Shown: positions 7,544 through 20,737, counted from the first letter of the stretch. The stretch: DNA of 64,000 bases from NC_042116.1, one strand, 5' to 3'. The notes: generated by a model from the sequence alone, not told the origin. Numbers and translations are program-made.

Positions 7544-7660
7544 GCAGTGATCGTCTAGAGGCTTAGGACACGAAAAGCGATTCTTGATTAAGAATCTTAC
7601 GGCATCCACAACTTTCATTCAACGAACGTAACGCAGGTTCGAATCCTGCTCACTGCACAA
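7544..7660 (+). ncRNA. tRNA-like RNA with scaffold insert replacing the anticodon loop (Y-like family, topology 3; Glu-like D arm)
   Basis: GCAGTGA/TCACTGC-A-CAA acceptor, GTC/GAC D arm, GCAGG-TTCGAAT-CCTGC T arm; insert GATTCTT-gatt-AAGAATC-TTACGGCAT. Confidence 0.75.
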
Positions 7661-7678
7661 AAATTAAAAAGGTATTAT

Positions 7679-8053
7679 ATGAAACTTGAATATACTCCAG
7701 TACCACATAAAATCGGTCCATTATTTGAAATTACGGTTGCACATGAACATGGTGATAGTGATAAATTAAACTACCATACATTGAAACTTGAAACTGCATC
7801 TGAAGATGAATTATTGACAGTACTAAAATATATAAATGAAACTTCAGACCAGATTAACGAAAAACGCTGGTATGATAAAAAACTTCCATTGAATTTTAGT
7901 TATGACCATGATGTTCAATACGCTGAGGGTAAAACCTTGTATTTTGCATTACAACCAGATTCTATCTATAGTGAACCATATGCGGCGATTTCAATAAAAG
8001 AAGTTCGTTTTATTGATGCAAATGGTGTTGAATCAATAGTTCAAGGTTGGTAA
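7679..8053 (+). CDS. hypothetical protein, EHGDxD motif (paralog of 10394)
   Basis: ITVAHEHGDSDK vs VELEYEHGDADA; similar N-termini (YTPV/FTPV). Confidence 0.75.
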   Translation: MKLEYTPVPHKIGPLFEITVAHEHGDSDKLNYHTLKLETASEDELLTVLKYINETSDQINEKRWYDKKLPLNFSYDHDVQYAEGKTLYFALQPDSIYSEPYAAISIKEVRFIDANGVESIVQGW

Positions 8054-8054
8054 T

Positions 8055-8357
8055 ATGAAAAGTATTTTGATTTTTGAATATGCAGCAACTGGTGAAGGTT
8101 GGCGTACTGTAATTCGTTTTCATAATCAAAGTCGTGTTACAGATGAAGCAGCGATTGAAACATTAAAAGCAGAATTTGATCCGTATTTTCATGTAGGTTT
8201 TGAATTACATGATATCAGTACTGTAAAAGATAATGAATCAGTTATGCGAACTTTGAAAGAACATGTACCAATTTTATACAATTATGTTATGTTGCCGCCT
8301 GATAGTTATCATCCGGTAATTCATGTAAAATATGAAGGTTATGTAAACTATTCATAA
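8055..8357 (+). CDS. hypothetical protein
   Basis: ORF track. Confidence 0.75.
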   Translation: MKSILIFEYAATGEGWRTVIRFHNQSRVTDEAAIETLKAEFDPYFHVGFELHDISTVKDNESVMRTLKEHVPILYNYVMLPPDSYHPVIHVKYEGYVNYS

Positions 8358-8366
8358 AAGTAATTT

Positions 8367-8495
8367 GTGGGGTTAGCTCAGTTTGGTAGAGCAACGAAAG
8401 AAACCAAAATGGAATCTTGAAAAGGATTCTAACAGCATTATATCTTCTACTGTAAATTCGCGGGTCGGTGTGTTCAAATCCACCACCCCACACAA
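8367..8495 (+). ncRNA. tRNA-like RNA with scaffold insert (Y-like family, topology 3)
   Basis: GTGGGGT/ACCCCAC-A-CAA acceptor, GCTC/GAGC D arm, CGAA/TTCG stem enclosing GAATC-ttgaaaag-GATTC-TAACAGCAT and a CTGTAAA heptamer. Confidence 0.8.
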
Positions 8496-8647
8496 AATTG
8501 GTAAAAAAGCTCTGCTGTGGGACATTATATTCATCCACATGTTATTAGTTATTTTAAACAATCTGGTGAATATTTCAATGAATTGGATAAAACCGAACCA
8601 AGTAAATCAGATGTTGGTGGTGAATCAACAATAACTGGAAAATAAAA

Positions 8648-9010
8648 ATGAAAGTATATATTGATGACATTCGCGATCCAAAAAAGTACTTGACACCAGA
8701 ACAGGCCGATGGTATTGTATGGATTAAAGAAGCATGGAATGCACGTAACTTTTTAGTTGAACATGAATCCGTGATTGAAGTACTTCATCTTGATAATTAC
8801 CTTGATGATGAACTCATTACCGGAACAGATATATTCTTTATGGTTGCAGGTGAAACCATATGGGGTGATCGGTCAGAATGGGCTAATCTTAAAACAATTT
8901 ATTTGCATTCATCAGATACTGATGTAATTGAAAAGTTGATGAAATATAAAGATGAGCTTCAAACAGCAGGGGTTGAATTAATTGACAACCACCAAGAAAG
9001 GAACTACTAA
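8648..9010 (+). CDS. cyclic-phosphate processing receiver-domain (cREC-like) protein
   Basis: KVYIDDIRDP ... LHLDNYL ... G.D ... IYLHSSD, matching the recalled (L/Y)xDDxRxP...xDHDL...HS family pattern. Confidence 0.65.
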   Translation: MKVYIDDIRDPKKYLTPEQADGIVWIKEAWNARNFLVEHESVIEVLHLDNYLDDELITGTDIFFMVAGETIWGDRSEWANLKTIYLHSSDTDVIEKLMKYKDELQTAGVELIDNHQERNY

Positions 9011-9370
9011 ATGAAAGTTTACGTAGATGATATTCGTAATCCAGCTAACCATCTCAGTACTGAACAGGCTGATGGTATTATTTGGATTAAAGAGTGGTGG
9101 GAAGCACGTAACTTCATTTTGAAGAATGGATTAGATATTGAAGTATTGCACTTTGATAATTTCTTAGGTGATCCAAATCATCGAACTGGTGGTGATATTC
9201 TAAGTTCAGTAATGTATCGTTTAAAACGTGGTAAATTTCCTAATTTGAAACAAATTTATTTACATAGTTCAGATAAAGAAGTAATTGATAAATTATATGA
9301 TTCATTTATTGAACGTTGTAATGAATATGGAATTGAGTTAATAAAAAATTCACGTCCAAATCGTAGTTAA
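9011..9370 (+). CDS. second cREC-like receiver-domain protein (tandem paralog)
   Basis: KVYVDDIRNP ... LHFDNFLG ... IYLHSSD; clear paralog of 8648. Confidence 0.65.
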   Translation: MKVYVDDIRNPANHLSTEQADGIIWIKEWWEARNFILKNGLDIEVLHFDNFLGDPNHRTGGDILSSVMYRLKRGKFPNLKQIYLHSSDKEVIDKLYDSFIERCNEYGIELIKNSRPNRS

Positions 9371-9376
9371 ACAAAT

Positions 9377-9500
9377 GGCGAGTTAGCTCAGAGGTAGAGC
9401 ACGTAGAAACCAAGGATTCTAGTACTAGATTCCCGCAGCAACAATAACTCATACTATGATAAAGTCGTGGTCGGGGGTTCAAATCCCTCACTCGCCGCAA
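9377..9500 (+). ncRNA. tRNA-like RNA with scaffold insert (Y-like family, topology 3)
   Basis: GGCGAGT/ACTCGCC-G-CAA acceptor, GCTC/GAGC D arm, GGGGG-TTCAAAT-CCCTC T arm; insert GGATTCTAG-ta-CTAGATTCC-CGCAGCAA. Confidence 0.8.
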
Positions 9501-9562
9501 ATAAATATCATTTTTCGAACCAACTGTGATAAATAAAAATAAATCATAGAGGGTTCGAAAAA

Positions 9563-19504: not shown

Positions 19505-19581
19505 GGTCACATAGCACAATTGGTTAGTGCGTTCGCCTGTTAAGTGAGAGGTTATAGGTTCAAGTCCTATTGTGACCGCAA
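19505..19581 (+). tRNA. tRNA-Asn(GUU), 3' end CAA
   Basis: GGTCACA/TGTGACC-G; TTCGC-CTGTTAA-GTGAG. Confidence 0.92.
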
Positions 19582-19626
19582 AGTAATGTTTGGGCGGTTT
19601 AATAATACATAAATCCAAACATTATA

Positions 19627-19669
19627 AAGAATCTTTCAGCATTAACACGGTGAAAATATATAGATTCTT
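19627..19669 (+). ncRNA. shortest Y-like family member
   Basis: AAGAATCT/AGATTCTT, TTCAGCAT, GGTGAAAA loop. Confidence 0.55.
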
Positions 19670-19673
19670 GATT

Positions 19674-19749
19674 AGGCTCATGGTGTAATTGGTTAACACA
19701 CGAGATTTTGATTCTCGCGTTCAGGGTTCGAGTCCTTGTGGGCCTGCTA
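19674..19749 (+). tRNA. tRNA-Gln(UUG), 3' end CTA
   Basis: AGGCTCA/TGGGCCT-G; CGAGA-TTTTGAT-TCTCG. Confidence 0.9.
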
Positions 19750-19765
19750 ATTTAAAAGGTTAATT

Positions 19766-19996
19766 ATGTTCGAAGATGATGAAGTACAATTAGTACCATT
19801 TTTAGTACAGGGTAAATTGAGAAAATCTGAATATATGGTTGATGAACCAACATATCGTGATATTCAAAATCTGGTAATGGCTTCCTCTGAAGAAGAAGCT
19901 GAAGATAAGTTTATTAAACATTATGAAAGTAAATCAAGTTCATATGATGTTGATTATTCAGTTGTCAATGTAGTAGTTAACAAAACCCTAATTTAA
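19766..19996 (+). CDS. hypothetical protein
   Basis: AAGG RBS; ORF track. Confidence 0.75.
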   Translation: MFEDDEVQLVPFLVQGKLRKSEYMVDEPTYRDIQNLVMASSEEEAEDKFIKHYESKSSSYDVDYSVVNVVVNKTLI

Positions 19997-20137
19997 AGTT
20001 TTCATTTCCTTGGTGAAAACAAGCTTGTATGATTCCCCCAGCTTGTAAAATTATATGACGGGAACCGCGTTGCACCTGTACAGGTCAGATTGTAAAGATC
20101 AAGTATGTACAGTACTGAGAGCGGCAGTACGAAAAAT

Positions 20138-20222
20138 GCGGGATTAGCTCAGTGGTAGAGCACTTGCCTTCCAAGCAAGAGGCGAATAGGTTCCATCGGT
20201 TCGAATCCGATATTCCGCTCAA
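20138..20222 (+). tRNA. tRNA-Gly(UCC) with abnormal 15-nt variable region, 3' end CAA
   Basis: GCGGGAT/ATTCCGC-T; CTTGC-CTTCCAA-GCAAG; variable AGGCGAATAGGTTCC. Confidence 0.85.
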
Positions 20223-20338
20223 ATTAAACAAACAATAAGGTAAATCCTATGATGCTATAGAAAAACAGTACTGGTCCTCCTGATAACTTTAATTCAGAAC
20301 AAAACACTAAATTAAATATTATCCAAAAGGAACATACC

Positions 20339-20665
20339 ATGTTAAACAAAGAACAATATATTACTGTAAAAAATACTTGGAAATTAGAAAAAGAGCATAA
20401 CATTTTCGACCATGTGGTTTATAATGTTATTCGTGGCCTACCATCAGATAATGGGTTTGCACCAATTACTGATAAAGGAAAACTTCAAGCAAATAATAAC
20501 GACCCGTATAATATGTACAACTATGCAGTTCTTGAATTGCATTATGAGTTGAATGAAAAACGATACAATTATGAAAAAACAGTACAACATTATTCTAAAC
20601 TATTTGGCATTGAATTTACACCTGAACTTATCGAAGTAGTACTTACTTTGATTAAAGTTAAATAA
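20339..20665 (+). CDS. hypothetical protein
   Basis: AAGGA RBS; ORF track. Confidence 0.75.
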   Translation: MLNKEQYITVKNTWKLEKEHNIFDHVVYNVIRGLPSDNGFAPITDKGKLQANNNDPYNMYNYAVLELHYELNEKRYNYEKTVQHYSKLFGIEFTPELIEVVLTLIKVK

Positions 20666-20673
20666 CAGAATTA

Positions 20674-20737
20674 AAGAATCCAACAGCACCCATAAATGAA
20701 ATCAACTGTTAATTGAAAAATTCAAAAATGGATTCTT
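20674..20737 (+). ncRNA. minimal Y-like RNA with Asn(GUU) stem-loop (copy of 18855)
   Basis: AAGAATCCA/TGGATTCTT (compensatory change vs 18855), ACAGCAC, TCAA-CTGTTAA-TTGA. Confidence 0.8.

Follow-up and report, generated by a model that had tools for sequence, protein, structure and literature searches.

The tRNA genes near the end of the genome of the Yersinia jumbo phage fHe-Yen9-04 are interleaved with small structured elements, and the locus raises the question of whether these are Y-RNA-like molecules, as the original prediction had it, or something else. In the window, by which we mean the whole stretch analysed here (the last 64 kb of the phage genome), we find one structured RNA module, called E in the following, in 15 copies that all lie on the + strand between positions 7544 and 20737. 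E has three parts: the helix P1; the 3′ strand J1, with the consensus GAAUCYWA-CAGCAA; and J2, an A-rich 5′ strand (UAGAAACCAA-like, often UAGAAAC-like) that precedes the other P1 arm. The anchoring pattern GAWTYNNNCRGCA has 15 matches in the window against 0.58 expected from shuffled sequence, and 14 of these are on the + strand between 7592 and 20688; the pattern misses the copy at 15544–15662, which has GAAAUC. The arms of P1 form 7–10 bp, mostly exact, and the strand adjoining the motif carries GAAUC in a register fixed relative to CAGCA. Arm sequences differ among copies and stay complementary, so that the predicted covariation of the helix is borne out. The helix and motif were thus rightly recognized, but not as a local hairpin, as P1 is in 12 of 15 copies a long-range pairing of the two ends of the element, and the CGGCA variant noted in J1 (at 7600) is joined by a UCAGCA variant at 19637. 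The three topologies that had been proposed are real: three copies are inserted in tRNAs, six flank circularly permuted tRNA-like bodies, and six are minimal, enclosing an anticodon-stem-loop-like hairpin only, or nothing.

Insertion into what had been called a normal tRNA can now be given a site, namely the anticodon stem, which is interrupted at nt 28/29 or 31/32 in all three tRNA homologues (all +). E-tRNA 1 (7544–7657) is a tRNA-Glu homologue with E at 7573–7613 (nt 28/29) and the CGGCA form of J1; it matches the Rfam tRNA model end-to-end with 38.6 bits, 54 nt being placed inside the top two anticodon-stem pairs. The anticodon loop reads AUUCAAC (UCA) in this phage, against AUUUCAC (UUC, Glu) in the relatives Serratia BF, Pectobacterium CBB and Cronobacter GAP32. 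E-tRNA 2 (8367–8492) is class-I-shaped, with E at 8399–8449 (nt 31/32), the anticodon loop CUGUAAA (GUA) and an irregular T arm; the anticodon stem of its BF orthologue is perfect (GCGAA/TTCGC). E-tRNA 3 (9377–9497) has a tRNA-Lys-family body with E at 9404–9452 (nt 28/29) and aligns end-to-end with the Rfam tRNA model at 46.4 bits, the model placing 62 extra nt within the top two anticodon-stem pairs; it has the anticodon GAU, against UUU in BF, CBB, GAP32 and two metagenomic relatives. When E is deleted in silico, ARAGORN reports tRNAs with 7-nt loops. An uninterrupted phage tRNA-Lys of the same design as E-tRNA 3 (GAGC-A-CGGGG-CUUUUAA-CCUCG-UGGUC) is found in L275; a search for an E-less allele of these same E-bearing genes found none. 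In 14 E-tRNAs segmented by hand, the paired cells number 98/98 in the acceptor, 56/56 in the D arm, 42/42 in the anticodon stem-loop, 69/70 in the T arm and 68/70 in P1, with several pair types. As all helices stay paired, the interrupted genes are still under tRNA-like selection, and they retain the 7-bp acceptor, the discriminator and sometimes an encoded CCA. J1 is 17–20 nt long in these genes, which makes the distance from P1 to the stem-loop nearly constant; the sequences at the exon–E boundaries are not conserved.

The six permuted copies (all +) run in the order T arm, closed acceptor, D arm. P-A (15245–15360) leads from one arm of P1 through ACAGCA, an A-U hairpin, the T arm, a closed hairpin, a mini D arm and J2 to the other arm, and its 5′ leader (15236–15243) pairs with the hairpin loop (15314–15321), a pairing kept in CBB and GAP32. 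In P-B (15544–15662), where P1 is the GAAAUC variant, leader 15532–15540 pairs with loop 15617–15625, and this helix shows compensatory changes in the CBB orthologue (TAGCAACA/TGTTGCTA). Signals for expression are seen in the extended −10 promoters that lie directly upstream of both, past a terminator-like hairpin; that of P-A is at 15198–15227, just past the hairpin at 15094–15109. P-C (15747–15861) begins 3 nt past tRNA-Glu (15668–15743), and P-D (15900–16052; P1 GGAUUUAU/AUAAAUCC) is, with 153 nt, the longest copy. P-E (18137–18269) has a Leu-like class II body with a long variable arm, and its anticodon stem covaries (GCUGU/ACAGC here versus GCUAU/AUAGC in CBB and GAP32). P-F (18540–18661) has a full-size tRNA body. 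In its BF and GAP32 orthologues, 4 nt link the two strands of the 7-bp acceptor; the first acceptor pair of the Yersinia copy is U-U. The anticodon stem of P-F covaries, being GCCAC/GUAGC here, GUCGC/GCAAC in GAP32 and GCAGC/GCUGC in CBB. The bodies of P-A, P-B and P-C are reduced (4-bp T stems, 5-bp "acceptor" hairpins and leader–loop pseudoknots) and, to judge from their sequences, could not mature into working tRNAs. Several permuted copies are without U33 in the presumed anticodon loop.

The invariant AGC found 1–2 nt past the terminal helix recalls a retron-like ncRNA, with its a1/a2 helix and priming G, and the invariant GCA, followed by short stop-terminated frames in many copies, recalls the resume codon of a tmRNA-like rescue RNA with a tRNA-like domain, but we give these ideas hardly any credence. 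The annotation table of CBB holds no reverse transcriptase, and the helix is a closed hairpin in three copies, so that free ends are not needed. Neither a common length nor a common C-terminal tag is seen in the frames after GCA, several of which continue through the T arm; the permuted copies have closed acceptor stems, and the only Rfam tmRNA match is a 13-nt T-arm fragment. Permuted tRNA-like genes do have a precedent in bacteria, namely two-piece tmRNA, whose pieces stay together through base-pairing once the linker is gone; however, there is a single tmRNA gene per genome, and its features, which are the alanine-charged acceptor, the tag reading frame and pseudoknots, are not found in the E family.

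The six minimal copies (all +) are reduced further. M1 (16279–16335) begins 5 nt past the tRNA at 16201–16273 and encloses UCAAA-CUUUUAA-UUUGA, which resembles a Lys anticodon stem-loop. M2 (17907–17962) ends 4 nt short of tRNA-Ile (17967–18039) and has a near-duplicate in M3 (18776–18831; 2 differences in 56 nt). M4 (18854–18917) encloses UCAA-CUGUUAA-UUGA, resembling an Asn anticodon stem-loop, a hairpin that recurs in M6 (20674–20737) and is invariant in nine copies from at least seven phages or contigs. M5 (19627–19669), the UCAGCA variant, has no payload hairpin and ends 4 nt short of tRNA-Gln (19674–19747). Payload-free and hairpin-only copies are kept across genera. Among the other genes of the region are HNH endonuclease genes directly downstream of E-tRNA 3 (9563–10195) and of M4 (18937–19443), and an Acb2/Tad1-type anti-defence gene at 17249–17509.

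The 3–5 nt gaps at M2/tRNA-Ile, M5/tRNA-Gln, tRNA-Glu/P-C and the tRNA at 16201–16273/M1, and the co-orientation of every E copy with the tRNAs, could suggest that E is a processing, punctuation or stability hairpin of long tRNA–mRNA transcripts, where a single cut, made by a host or phage RNase or by the RNA itself, frees the neighbouring tRNAs, or where E forms a protective end, with no ligation. We consider this improbable. RNase P and 3′ processing suffice for tRNA maturation, and the tRNAs need no such help; one cut inside the three E-tRNAs would destroy well-conserved tRNAs, and the permuted bodies and the constant 28/29 position are left unexplained. The HDV-like theta ribozymes that adjoin and process phage tRNAs are a precedent, as they too are small and structured, lie close against viral tRNA genes and are linked to tRNA maturation, but they adopt a nested double-pseudoknot HDV fold 3′ of the tRNA (PMC10879173), whereas E lies inside or around tRNA bodies and matches none of the Rfam ribozymes, also with the E-value limit relaxed to 10.

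BF, CBB and GAP32 have each kept about 15–17 copies, and the reach of the family is wider still, as J1 and J2 recur on permuted tRNA-Lys, Asn-anticodon and Ser-anticodon genes of three other metagenomic lineages, two of which look like giant viruses. In BF, CBB and GAP32, E forms a hairpin inside the Lys-family scaffold; in two GVMAG contigs (L078 and L082) that scaffold is circularly permuted, with E split at its ends, so that one tRNA-Lys scaffold exists in both inserted and permuted form. J1 (ACAGCAA) and J2 (UAGAAACCAA) are conserved in these contigs, but P1 is now GUUUUCAU/AUGAAAAC. The permuted gene with the Asn anticodon (L189) encodes G-CCA, followed by a 5-nt linker, and a 58-kb viral contig has a permuted Ser-anticodon copy with yet another P1. 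The P1 sequences of the three lineages are quite different and still paired; E is conserved, and covaries, across genera and very distant viruses. The anticodon is swapped on a constant body in several cases (UUC to UCA, UUU to GAU, and GCU on a class I body), and this agrees no less well with display of a stem-loop than with decoding.

The occurrence of E in very distant viruses suggests mobility, and together with the GANTC site (GAATC/GATTC) in the arms of most copies, the two HNH endonuclease genes and the near-identical M2 and M3 it could point to a DNA repeat, i.e. a recombination or homing target, a mobile miniature inverted-repeat element or a methylation site, in which RNA structure is incidental. 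We find this very unlikely. The strand bias is complete, with the asymmetric J1 and J2 always on the transcribed strand, where one arm departs from the consensus its partner has the compensating change, and the payloads show RNA-type covariation, while P1 of the other lineages is paired without GANTC and J1/J2 are still conserved. The claim of a modular, tRNA-linked family selected at the level of RNA structure is supported.

The same cannot be said of the Y-RNA label. The core of P-F (18574–18636) matches the tRNA-like core of YrlA in a local search with 36.2 bits (E 3e-6), over model positions 24–84 only and below the gathering score of 69; the other copies are unmatched. E shares with YrlA (RF02553; PMC4201824) a closed-acceptor permuted core (T arm, acceptor-like hairpin, D arm) on a stem formed by the ends. 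However, the flanking Rsr-binding part of the model is unmatched in P-F, and the 5′ motif GNCGAAN0-1G, which defines the Rsr-binding end of YrlA (PMC4201824), is absent from the E arms, whose conserved handle (GAAUC..ACAGCAA plus the A-rich strand) is unrelated. Unlike YrlA, E is present in 15 copies per genome and three topologies, with no adjacent or detectable Ro60/TROVE gene and no rtcBA: as had been noted, no Ro60/TROVE or RtcB is seen in the window (none among 22 ORFs of at least 200 aa), and the authors' Pfam/HHpred table for CBB has no entry for TROVE, Ro60 or RtcB either.

We tentatively favor another explanation, to which we give somewhat less than an even chance, namely that E is an intervening and permutation junction of a non-BHB kind that is cut out and re-joined by end-healing and ligase enzymes of the phage. 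E would mark the points in tRNA-derived RNAs where these are cut and rejoined. In the E-tRNAs, it would be cut out of the anticodon stem on its 5′ strand (28/29 or 31/32), and healing and sealing of the nick would restore a normal tRNA. In the permuted genes, P1 would join the ends of the split E and the same cut-and-join would circularise the body; the short linker of an intact acceptor could then be the place where the circle is opened, through RNase P, 3′ trimming and CCA addition. Copies with a mini-exon or none may give small circles or hairpins, or may be propagated copies of a selfish element. We infer both the cleavage and the ligation, as well as the cutter (an enzyme or the RNA itself), the exact cut sites and the fate of the minimal copies.

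Intron-containing, split and permuted tRNA genes that depend on a bulge-helix-bulge (BHB) are known from Archaea, red and green algae and the prasinovirus BpV1 (PMC4390854, PMC6379350, PMC3673656), and inserted and permuted forms with one junction are the pattern of such disrupted genes (PMC4390854, PMC3673656). By analogy, E appears to match this pattern: one junction element is common to the interrupted and permuted versions, in the permuted version the 3′ half precedes the 5′ half with a short acceptor linker between them, and the junction lies in the anticodon arm, the exons reconstituting a canonical tRNA. Unlike in BHB genes, the two junctions of E share one strand of the anticodon stem (28/29), which leaves no way to draw a bulge-helix-bulge; they are flanked instead by conserved single strands of 6–11 nt and 17–20 nt, closed by a 7–10 bp helix. 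The hosts of E include enterobacterial phages, and many copies have a reduced payload or none. The "enigmatic" tRNA introns of Lak megaphages likewise lie in the anticodon arm and lead tRNAscan to call pseudo or over-long tRNAs, but they are placed at the canonical 37/38 and are about 90 nt long, and ACAGCAA is absent from their published sequences (Table S6, PMC6784885).

Candidate enzymes are close at hand. Two tandem cREC_REC genes (8648–9010 and 9011–9370, +; PF20274, E 1.7e-8 and 1e-9) lie between E-tRNA 2 and E-tRNA 3, and BF, CBB and GAP32 have the same pair directly upstream of E-tRNA-Lys. As cRec is predicted to resolve 2′,3′-cyclic phosphate ends for ATP-grasp RNA ligases (PMC7824862), these genes are possible end-healing enzymes. 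Outside this phage clade the link of cRec to E does not hold, as the cRec homologues of Eowyn and phiR1-37 have neither tRNA nor E nearby. Of the repair genes proposed for a search in relatives, CBB has Rnl1 and Pnkp, not TROVE/Ro60 or RtcB, and its annotation further includes a Naegleria-type nick-sealing ligase, a CCA-adding enzyme and a Thg1-like enzyme. Its annotation table has no entry for an EndA-type splicing endonuclease, nor the word "splicing". The lack of an endonuclease candidate counts against excision, as do the unconserved exon–E boundaries, the failure to find an E-less allele, the loose link of cRec to E outside the clade, the reduced bodies of P-A, P-B and P-C, the missing U33 and the anticodon swaps, and splicing alone does not explain the conserved payload-free and hairpin-only copies.

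The main rival, which retains the decoy-or-tether idea of the original prediction, is that E is never removed and that the RNAs are stable, modular tRNA mimics that work like Y RNA. E would be the common handle for one protein or a stabilising fold, and the payload, be it a whole tRNA, an elbow or an anticodon stem-loop, would bind or soak up factors that recognise tRNA, e.g. anticodon nucleases of the host; the permuted genes would give closed or two-piece molecules, like two-piece tmRNAs, of the same three-dimensional shape as the inserted ones. The YrlA-like core of P-F, the conservation of hairpin-only and empty copies with the invariant Asn-like stem-loop, the nearly constant spacing set by J1, the swaps on constant bodies and the anti-defence gene in the same region would all fit, and circular permutation is neutral for a purely structural RNA. 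For each of the displayed anticodons (Lys UUU, Asn GUU, Tyr GUA, Glu UUC) the phage also has a canonical tRNA, and anticodons of this kind are the classic targets of PrrC- and colicin E5-type nucleases. Nevertheless, we regard this as somewhat less likely than a junction that is cut and re-joined: neither a Ro60/TROVE gene nor an Rsr-binding motif was found and there is no candidate partner protein, a decoy does not require insertion into the anticodon stem of otherwise perfectly maintained tRNAs, and the bound factor would have to be present in the hosts of both phages and probable giant viruses, or be encoded by both.

A further parallel among phage small RNAs co-located with tRNAs comes from T4, whose tRNA cluster ends with the genes of two stable RNAs, C and D (species 1 and 2), which have no known function. 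RNA C ends in a T arm and RNA D contains GAGAAACC and ACAGCAGAAAC, not in the E arrangement, and a scan of the T4 region found no paired E-type helix adjoining ACAGCAA or GCAGCAA. In line with the expectation that no earlier description exists, we found none of the E family in the searchable literature and no match in Rfam. In conclusion, E appears from its sequence to be a previously undescribed structured RNA module, which occurs in three topologies and at a fixed position in tRNA numbering, and it probably represents a new means by which tRNAs are interrupted and rearranged, not a Y RNA.

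We find that all 15 elements which the original prediction placed between 7544 and 20737 are present, on the + strand throughout, in the 354,378-bp genome of Yersinia phage fHe-Yen9-04 (NC_042116.1), an Eneladusvirus, to which the region 7400-20800 is 100% identical. The window forms the final 64 kb of the record and begins at its position 290,379. DNA that is ~85% identical is found in Serratia phage BF and in the Erwinia pEa_SNUABM phages, and Pectobacterium phage CBB and Cronobacter phage GAP32 (genus Mimasvirus) are remoter relatives. ARAGORN finds 24 tRNAs in the window, Rfam gives 26 tRNA matches, and RefSeq names three over-long genes there 'tRNA-Pseudo' or 'tRNA-Undet'. 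The anchored pattern GAWTYNNNCRGCA matches 15 times in the window, where dinucleotide shuffles predict 0.58; fourteen of these matches belong to the family and the fifteenth is a single minus-strand match within an adhesin gene, and the family member at 15544-15662 carries GAAAUC and so escapes the pattern. A stricter 18-nt pattern matches four times, with none expected.

The shared RNA module, which we call E, has the order J2, arm, loop or two termini, arm', J1. The two arms form helix P1 of 7–10 bp, J1 consists of A-CAGCAA and a variable spacer, and J2 is an A-rich strand ahead of the other arm, frequently UAGAAAC-like. In 57 copies anchored on CAGCA, the helix strand before this motif reads G-A-A/U-U-C in a constant register (G in 51 copies, A in all 57), and is followed by two variable positions, A, an invariant C-(A/G)-G-C-A, A (46/57) and a loose nnAwAA. 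The helix covaries, as had been claimed: 59 copies from four phages hold 23 distinct helices with 157 of 161 positions paired, a count that is biased because the copies were selected for paired arms, whereas only 4.0 of 7 positions pair when arms are taken from different copies. Unbiased support for P1 comes from elements that were located via their tRNA body and then showed complementary arms. A pairing of the motif RCAG with the loop CUGU, suggested by RNAalifold for Asn-type minimal copies, was rejected because the motif stays invariant whatever loop is present, and taking J1 and J2 for Hfq (ARN)n sites leaves the invariant C positions unexplained. The circular order arm', J1, payload, J2, arm is constant, and the three topologies described earlier are borne out, with three copies inserted into a tRNA, six with a permuted tRNA body and six minimal ones.

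The inserted copies interrupt tRNA genes in the anticodon stem. In full-length alignment to the Rfam tRNA model (RF00005), the E-tRNAs at 9377-9497 and 7544-7657 score 46.4 and 38.6 bits, both above gathering, the insertion notwithstanding, and both form a cloverleaf with a 7-nt anticodon loop. Just the top two anticodon-stem pairs (CG/CG) are formed in these alignments, and the model places 62 and 54 nt, respectively, inside them. With E boundaries set by hand and by an ARAGORN scan of all in-silico deletions, the interruption falls at nt 28/29 both in 7544-7657, a near homologue of tRNA-Glu, and in 9377-9497, which has a Lys-family body, and at nt 31/32 in 8367-8492, which has the anticodon loop CUGUAAA and an irregular T arm and is called as a tRNA only once E is deleted. 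The remaining anticodon stem and 7-nt loop stand directly 3′ of E, and this stem covaries, with ACU/AGU in the window, ACA/UGU in BF and AGC/GCU in both CBB and GAP32. As an uninterrupted phage tRNA-Lys of exactly the same design is found on a 149-kb viral contig, the insertion point of E is fixed; exact E-less Lys- or Glu-type alleles were not found in IMG/VR, and a looser pattern retrieved one uninterrupted homologue. Among 14 hand-segmented E-tRNAs from eight sources, pairing was found in 98/98 cells of the acceptor, 56/56 of the D arm, 68/70 of P1, 42/42 of the anticodon stem-loop and 69/70 of the T arm, with several pair types per helix. The anticodons differ between relatives: the Glu-type E-tRNA has UCA (opal) here vs UUC (Glu) in BF, CBB and GAP32, and the Lys-type has GAU here vs UUU (Lys) in five relatives, and across these switches both types keep the 7-nt loop, U33 and a purine at 37. 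The tRNA table of the CBB authors marks two genes as 'intron present' and says nothing further on the element. We also note that the loop AUUCAAC of the Glu-type E-tRNA recurs in a permuted CBB copy (L005, 18579 region), and that a canonical amber-suppressor tRNA (CUA) lies at 2146-2221.

Two of the six permuted copies, P-E (18137-18269) and P-F (18540-18661), are full-size, with canonical T and D arms, a linker-closed acceptor and an anticodon stem to which both ends of the body contribute. Their acceptors have 6–7 paired positions closed by 4–6 nt, each with one mismatch in the window, and that of P-F is a perfect 7 bp in BF and GAP32. The anticodon stems covary between phages, as GCCAC/GUAGC, GUCGC/GCAAC and GCAGC/GCUGC in P-F and as GCUGU/ACAGC and GCUAU/AUAGC in P-E. 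The bodies of P-A (15245-15360), P-B (15544-15662), P-C (15747-15861) and P-D (15900-16052) are reduced, and U33 is missing from the loops of several permuted copies. P-A and P-B have extended -10 promoters of their own, 3′ of a terminator-like hairpin, and in each the 5′ leader pairs with the loop of its own acceptor-like hairpin, over 8 bp in P-A (15236-15243 with 15314-15321; UAAGGCAA/UUGCCUUA) and 9 bp in P-B (15532-15540 with 15617-15625; AAAAGCAAC/GUUGCUUUU). Compensatory changes in this pairing are seen in CBB. The complementarity points to a pseudoknot or else an alternative acceptor helix. An odd tRNA-like sequence (15421-15530, +), which neither ARAGORN nor Rfam calls, lies 3′ of a promoter at 15381-15410 in the interval from P-A to P-B; its T loop sits within a longer ACAGGG...CCCUGU helix, its GAUUCUAG-ACAAUCAUAA stretch resembles a decayed E, and part of its 3′ end was absent from BF, CBB and GAP32 in an exact search.

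The six minimal copies (16279-16335, 17907-17962, 18776-18831, 18854-18917, 19627-19669 and 20674-20737) enclose either nothing or a hairpin of 4–5 bp whose loop has 7 nt, and are spaced 3–5 nt from adjoining tRNAs. Two of them carry UCAA-CUGUUAA-UUGA, a hairpin with an Asn-type anticodon loop that is unchanged throughout nine copies in at least seven phages or contigs, and one has a Lys-type loop that is not retained in CBB. Separately, a hairpin GGAUUC-GAAA-GAAUCC with a U run after it (17251-17266, +), which shares the helix of P1 and lacks J1, lies at the 5′ end of the Acb2-like gene (17249-17509); it was scored as terminator-like by a scan, and its opposite strand gives a spurious Rfam match to the histone 3′ stem-loop.

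About 15–17 copies each, in the same three topologies and at syntenic positions, are found in BF, CBB and GAP32, and E also occurs on about eight further IMG/VR contigs of 355–405 kb and on one of 174 kb, which holds the smallest copy, a 38-nt hairpin. A wider search, which took the tRNA-body side of the junction and not the helix as its query, found a permuted tRNA-Lys(UUU) on two contigs binned as giant-virus MAGs (L078 and L082) and on matching JGI contigs. Its exons are almost identical to those of CBB, with J1 ACAGCAA, J2 UAGAAACCAA and P1 GUUUUCAU/AUGAAAAC. On the metagenome contig L189, a permuted tRNA bears an Asn (GUU) anticodon and P1 AGGAUCAU/GUGAUCCU, and its encoded G-CCA precedes a linker of 5 nt; the permuted copy on a 58-kb viral contig has GCU as its anticodon and UGAAAGCAU/AUGCUUUCA as its P1. 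As the same J1 and J2 go with differing P1, the two strands are conserved in sequence in very distant viruses and P1 is conserved as a helix only. The giant-virus MAG contigs have genes for a clamp loader of the RFC type, a TBP-like protein and a DnaJ of full length, and relatives of their RFC are found on contigs of up to 610 kb, for which reasons we provisionally take them to be probably Nucleocytoviricota. On the minus strand of L078/L082, the 3′ arm of the permuted tRNA-Lys continues directly into another ACAGCA, followed by a hairpin like an anticodon stem-loop and a normal tRNA-Thr(UGU), so that E units form a chain at these loci; ~200 nt upstream stands another tRNA-like element flanked by E.

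The original prediction had called the elements Y-RNA-like, a label we do not retain since they fall outside the definition of that family (PMC4201824) and the likeness is architectural only. The best match to YrlA (RF02553) reaches 36.2 bits, the gathering score being 69, in a single one of the 15 copies (P-F), and covers model positions 24–84 of 114, the tRNA-like core only. The 5′ motif GNCGAAN0-1G is the Rsr/Ro60 contact in the terminal stem of YrlA (PMC4201824); none of 57 distinct copies contains GNCGAA, and their terminal stems read (U/A)(G/A)GAAUCYW. YrlA is also encoded beside a Ro60/TROVE gene on the same strand. No TROVE or RtcB gene had been seen in the window, and we likewise find none among 42 ORFs scanned (22 of at least 200 aa and 20 small ones in the tRNA region), nor is there an entry for TROVE, Ro60 or RtcB in the authors' whole-genome Pfam/HHpred table of CBB. 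P-E and P-F share with YrlA a tRNA-like module that has both a T and a D arm and whose acceptor-like stem is closed; the common design is a closed, permuted tRNA-like core upon a terminal stem. The main rival to the explanation favored below, possible if doubtful, is that E is never removed and that its copies serve as Y-like scaffolds or decoys displaying parts of tRNAs.

Rfam, including its ribozymes, gave no match on any E copy at the gathering score or at E-values up to 10 with permissive filters, the matches in the region being tRNAs and the single sub-threshold YrlA core match. Readings of E as a hammerhead, k-turn, H/ACA box, CRISPR repeat, ToxI, attC or IS200 hairpin were rejected, since by eye each lacked core features, and the introns of Lak megaphages are not E-like. 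The T4 stable RNAs C and D, fetched and folded, have no E-type arrangement; RNA D (L054, 70908-71171) has a J2-like GAGAAACC near its 5′ end and a J1-like ACAGCAGAAAC near its 3′ end, a likeness that is probably due to chance. A retron- or tmRNA-like nature of E is hardly credible: no reverse transcriptase, which adjoins retron RNAs, is listed in the CBB table or present among the window ORFs, the helix is a closed hairpin in three copies, as opposed to the free ends of the retron a1/a2 helix, and the frames after GCA share no common tag. This reading, like those of E as a processing hairpin that is cut once, which we hold to be rather unlikely, and as a repeat at the DNA level, which is very improbable, fits less well than unremoved scaffolds or decoys.

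As in disrupted tRNAs with bulge-helix-bulge (BHB) junctions, a canonical tRNA results when the exons are joined in silico, and as in BHB-type permuted tRNAs the order is 3′ half, linker, 5′ half; the permuted tRNAs whose anticodons are of Lys, Asn and Ser(GCU) type (L078/L082, L189 and the 58-kb contig) have 7-nt acceptors with at most one mismatch. However, BHB-type introns and permuted tRNAs have the 3-4-3 motif, and none could be drawn for E by inspection. Both E junctions flank one nick position on the 5′ strand of the anticodon stem, with single-stranded flanks of 6–11 and 17–20 nt, and the only drawable J1–J2 pairing, of 4 bp in L078, is not retained in BF or CBB.

Two tandem paralogous cREC_REC genes (8648-9010 and 9011-9370, +) lie between the E-tRNAs at 8367-8492 and 9377-9497, and the same pair stands directly upstream of the E-tRNA-Lys in BF, CBB and GAP32. 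cRec domains are predicted to open 2′,3′-cyclic phosphate ends for ATP-grasp RNA ligases (PMC7824862). The tandem pair is limited to Eneladusvirus, Mimasvirus, XbC2 and Kaldavass, with single distant homologues in other large phages; a role of cRec as universal partner of E was rejected, as its homologues outside this clade, in Eowyn and phiR1-37, have neither a tRNA nor E in their vicinity. Among the gene products of CBB are Rnl1, Pnkp, a Naegleria-type RNA ligase, a CCA-adding enzyme, a Thg1-like enzyme, TyrRS and Pth2. BHB-type junctions call for a splicing endonuclease (EndA/TSEN) and an RtcB- or Trl1-type ligase; the CBB table, in which ~70% of proteins are without an assigned function, has neither the word 'splicing' nor RtcB, and does list Rnl1, Pnkp and the second ligase. 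A 179-aa SAM-dependent methyltransferase (32688-33227, +), annotated 'tRNA methyltransferase', occurs in the E-bearing clade and distant Xanthomonas jumbo phages only, and has generic Pfam matches only and no PDB sequence match. Among the tRNA genes, an 86-aa ORF (17249-17509, +) holds an Acb2/Tad1 hairpin domain (E 1.3e-19), which makes it a predicted sponge-type inhibitor of CBASS/Thoeris signalling, i.e., an anti-defence protein.

Other genes of the window are recorded as such. Three free-standing HNH endonuclease genes (9563-10195, 18937-19443 and 51823-52671, all +) are present, two of them directly 3′ of E-bearing elements, and the first is not at that locus in BF, CBB or GAP32. A 532-aa ORF (11794-13392, +) within the tRNA region encodes a trimeric-autotransporter-type adhesin with a YadA-like membrane anchor, and GAP32 has one too. 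A 339-aa ORF (41665-42684, +) has sigma-70 regions 2 and 3, so that the phage has a sigma-like factor of its own; the gene of an AAA+ ATPase is at 49305-50438, and five paralogous RCC1-repeat (beta-propeller) proteins of 366–388 aa are encoded near the genome end (57140-62889, -).

We tentatively favor, while regarding it as far from assured, that E is an intervening and permutation junction which is cut out and re-joined. An internal E would be cut from the anticodon stem and the nick then healed and sealed, and a split E would draw the ends of a permuted precursor together for the same reaction; the joined permuted precursors would be circles, afterwards opened at the acceptor linker. This is favored because interrupted genes stay maintained as tRNAs, the position of E is constant in tRNA numbering, one scaffold exists in inserted and permuted topologies, a permuted gene encodes CCA, and a kit of repair enzymes is present. 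It is weakened, on the other hand, because no endonuclease was found and no BHB can be drawn, the boundaries of E lack sequence conservation, payload-free and reduced copies are conserved, and anticodons drift on constant bodies.

A further, unlikely reading is that E is itself a new small catalytic RNA of ~45 nt, either self-cleaving and self-ligating or self-splicing. Such an RNA would excise itself from tRNA anticodon stems and circularise permuted tRNAs without a host-specific endonuclease, and the viral cRec, Pnkp and ligase would merely tidy and seal the ends. It would account for one J1/J2 core being at work in enterobacterial viruses and in probable giant viruses of eukaryotes. J2 (AGAAAC) may be likened to the 5′ strand of hairpin-ribozyme loop B, which has the equivalent position. 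The probability left over belongs to an explanation outside those named here.

In Rfam and in the literature on phage Y RNAs, permuted phage tRNAs, jumbo-phage tRNA introns, tRNA decoys and this phage, we found no family and no paper describing E, in agreement with the earlier claim that such a multi-topology array is undescribed. Permuted tRNA genes have been described in archaea, algae and a single prasinovirus, in every case with BHB junctions, and our literature search found no report of them in phages. We therefore class E among disrupted tRNA genes. If E is removed, as we tentatively favor, circularly permuted tRNA genes would for the first time be known from bacterial viruses, and E would represent a class of tRNA intervening sequence that is neither BHB nor group I. 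Enterobacteria would then host a pathway of tRNA splicing and circularisation powered by phage repair enzymes or by the RNA itself, and T4-type RNA ligase, Pnkp and cRec would have a constitutive substrate besides their known repair of host-nuclease damage. If E is not removed, the array would be a large family of modular RNAs that mimic tRNAs and take part in the conflict between phage and host over tRNAs. Either way, annotation pipelines call E-bearing phage genes 'pseudo' or 'undetermined' tRNAs, or overlook them, and it is unusual for phages to have a conserved core in common with probable giant viruses, which can be put to direct test.
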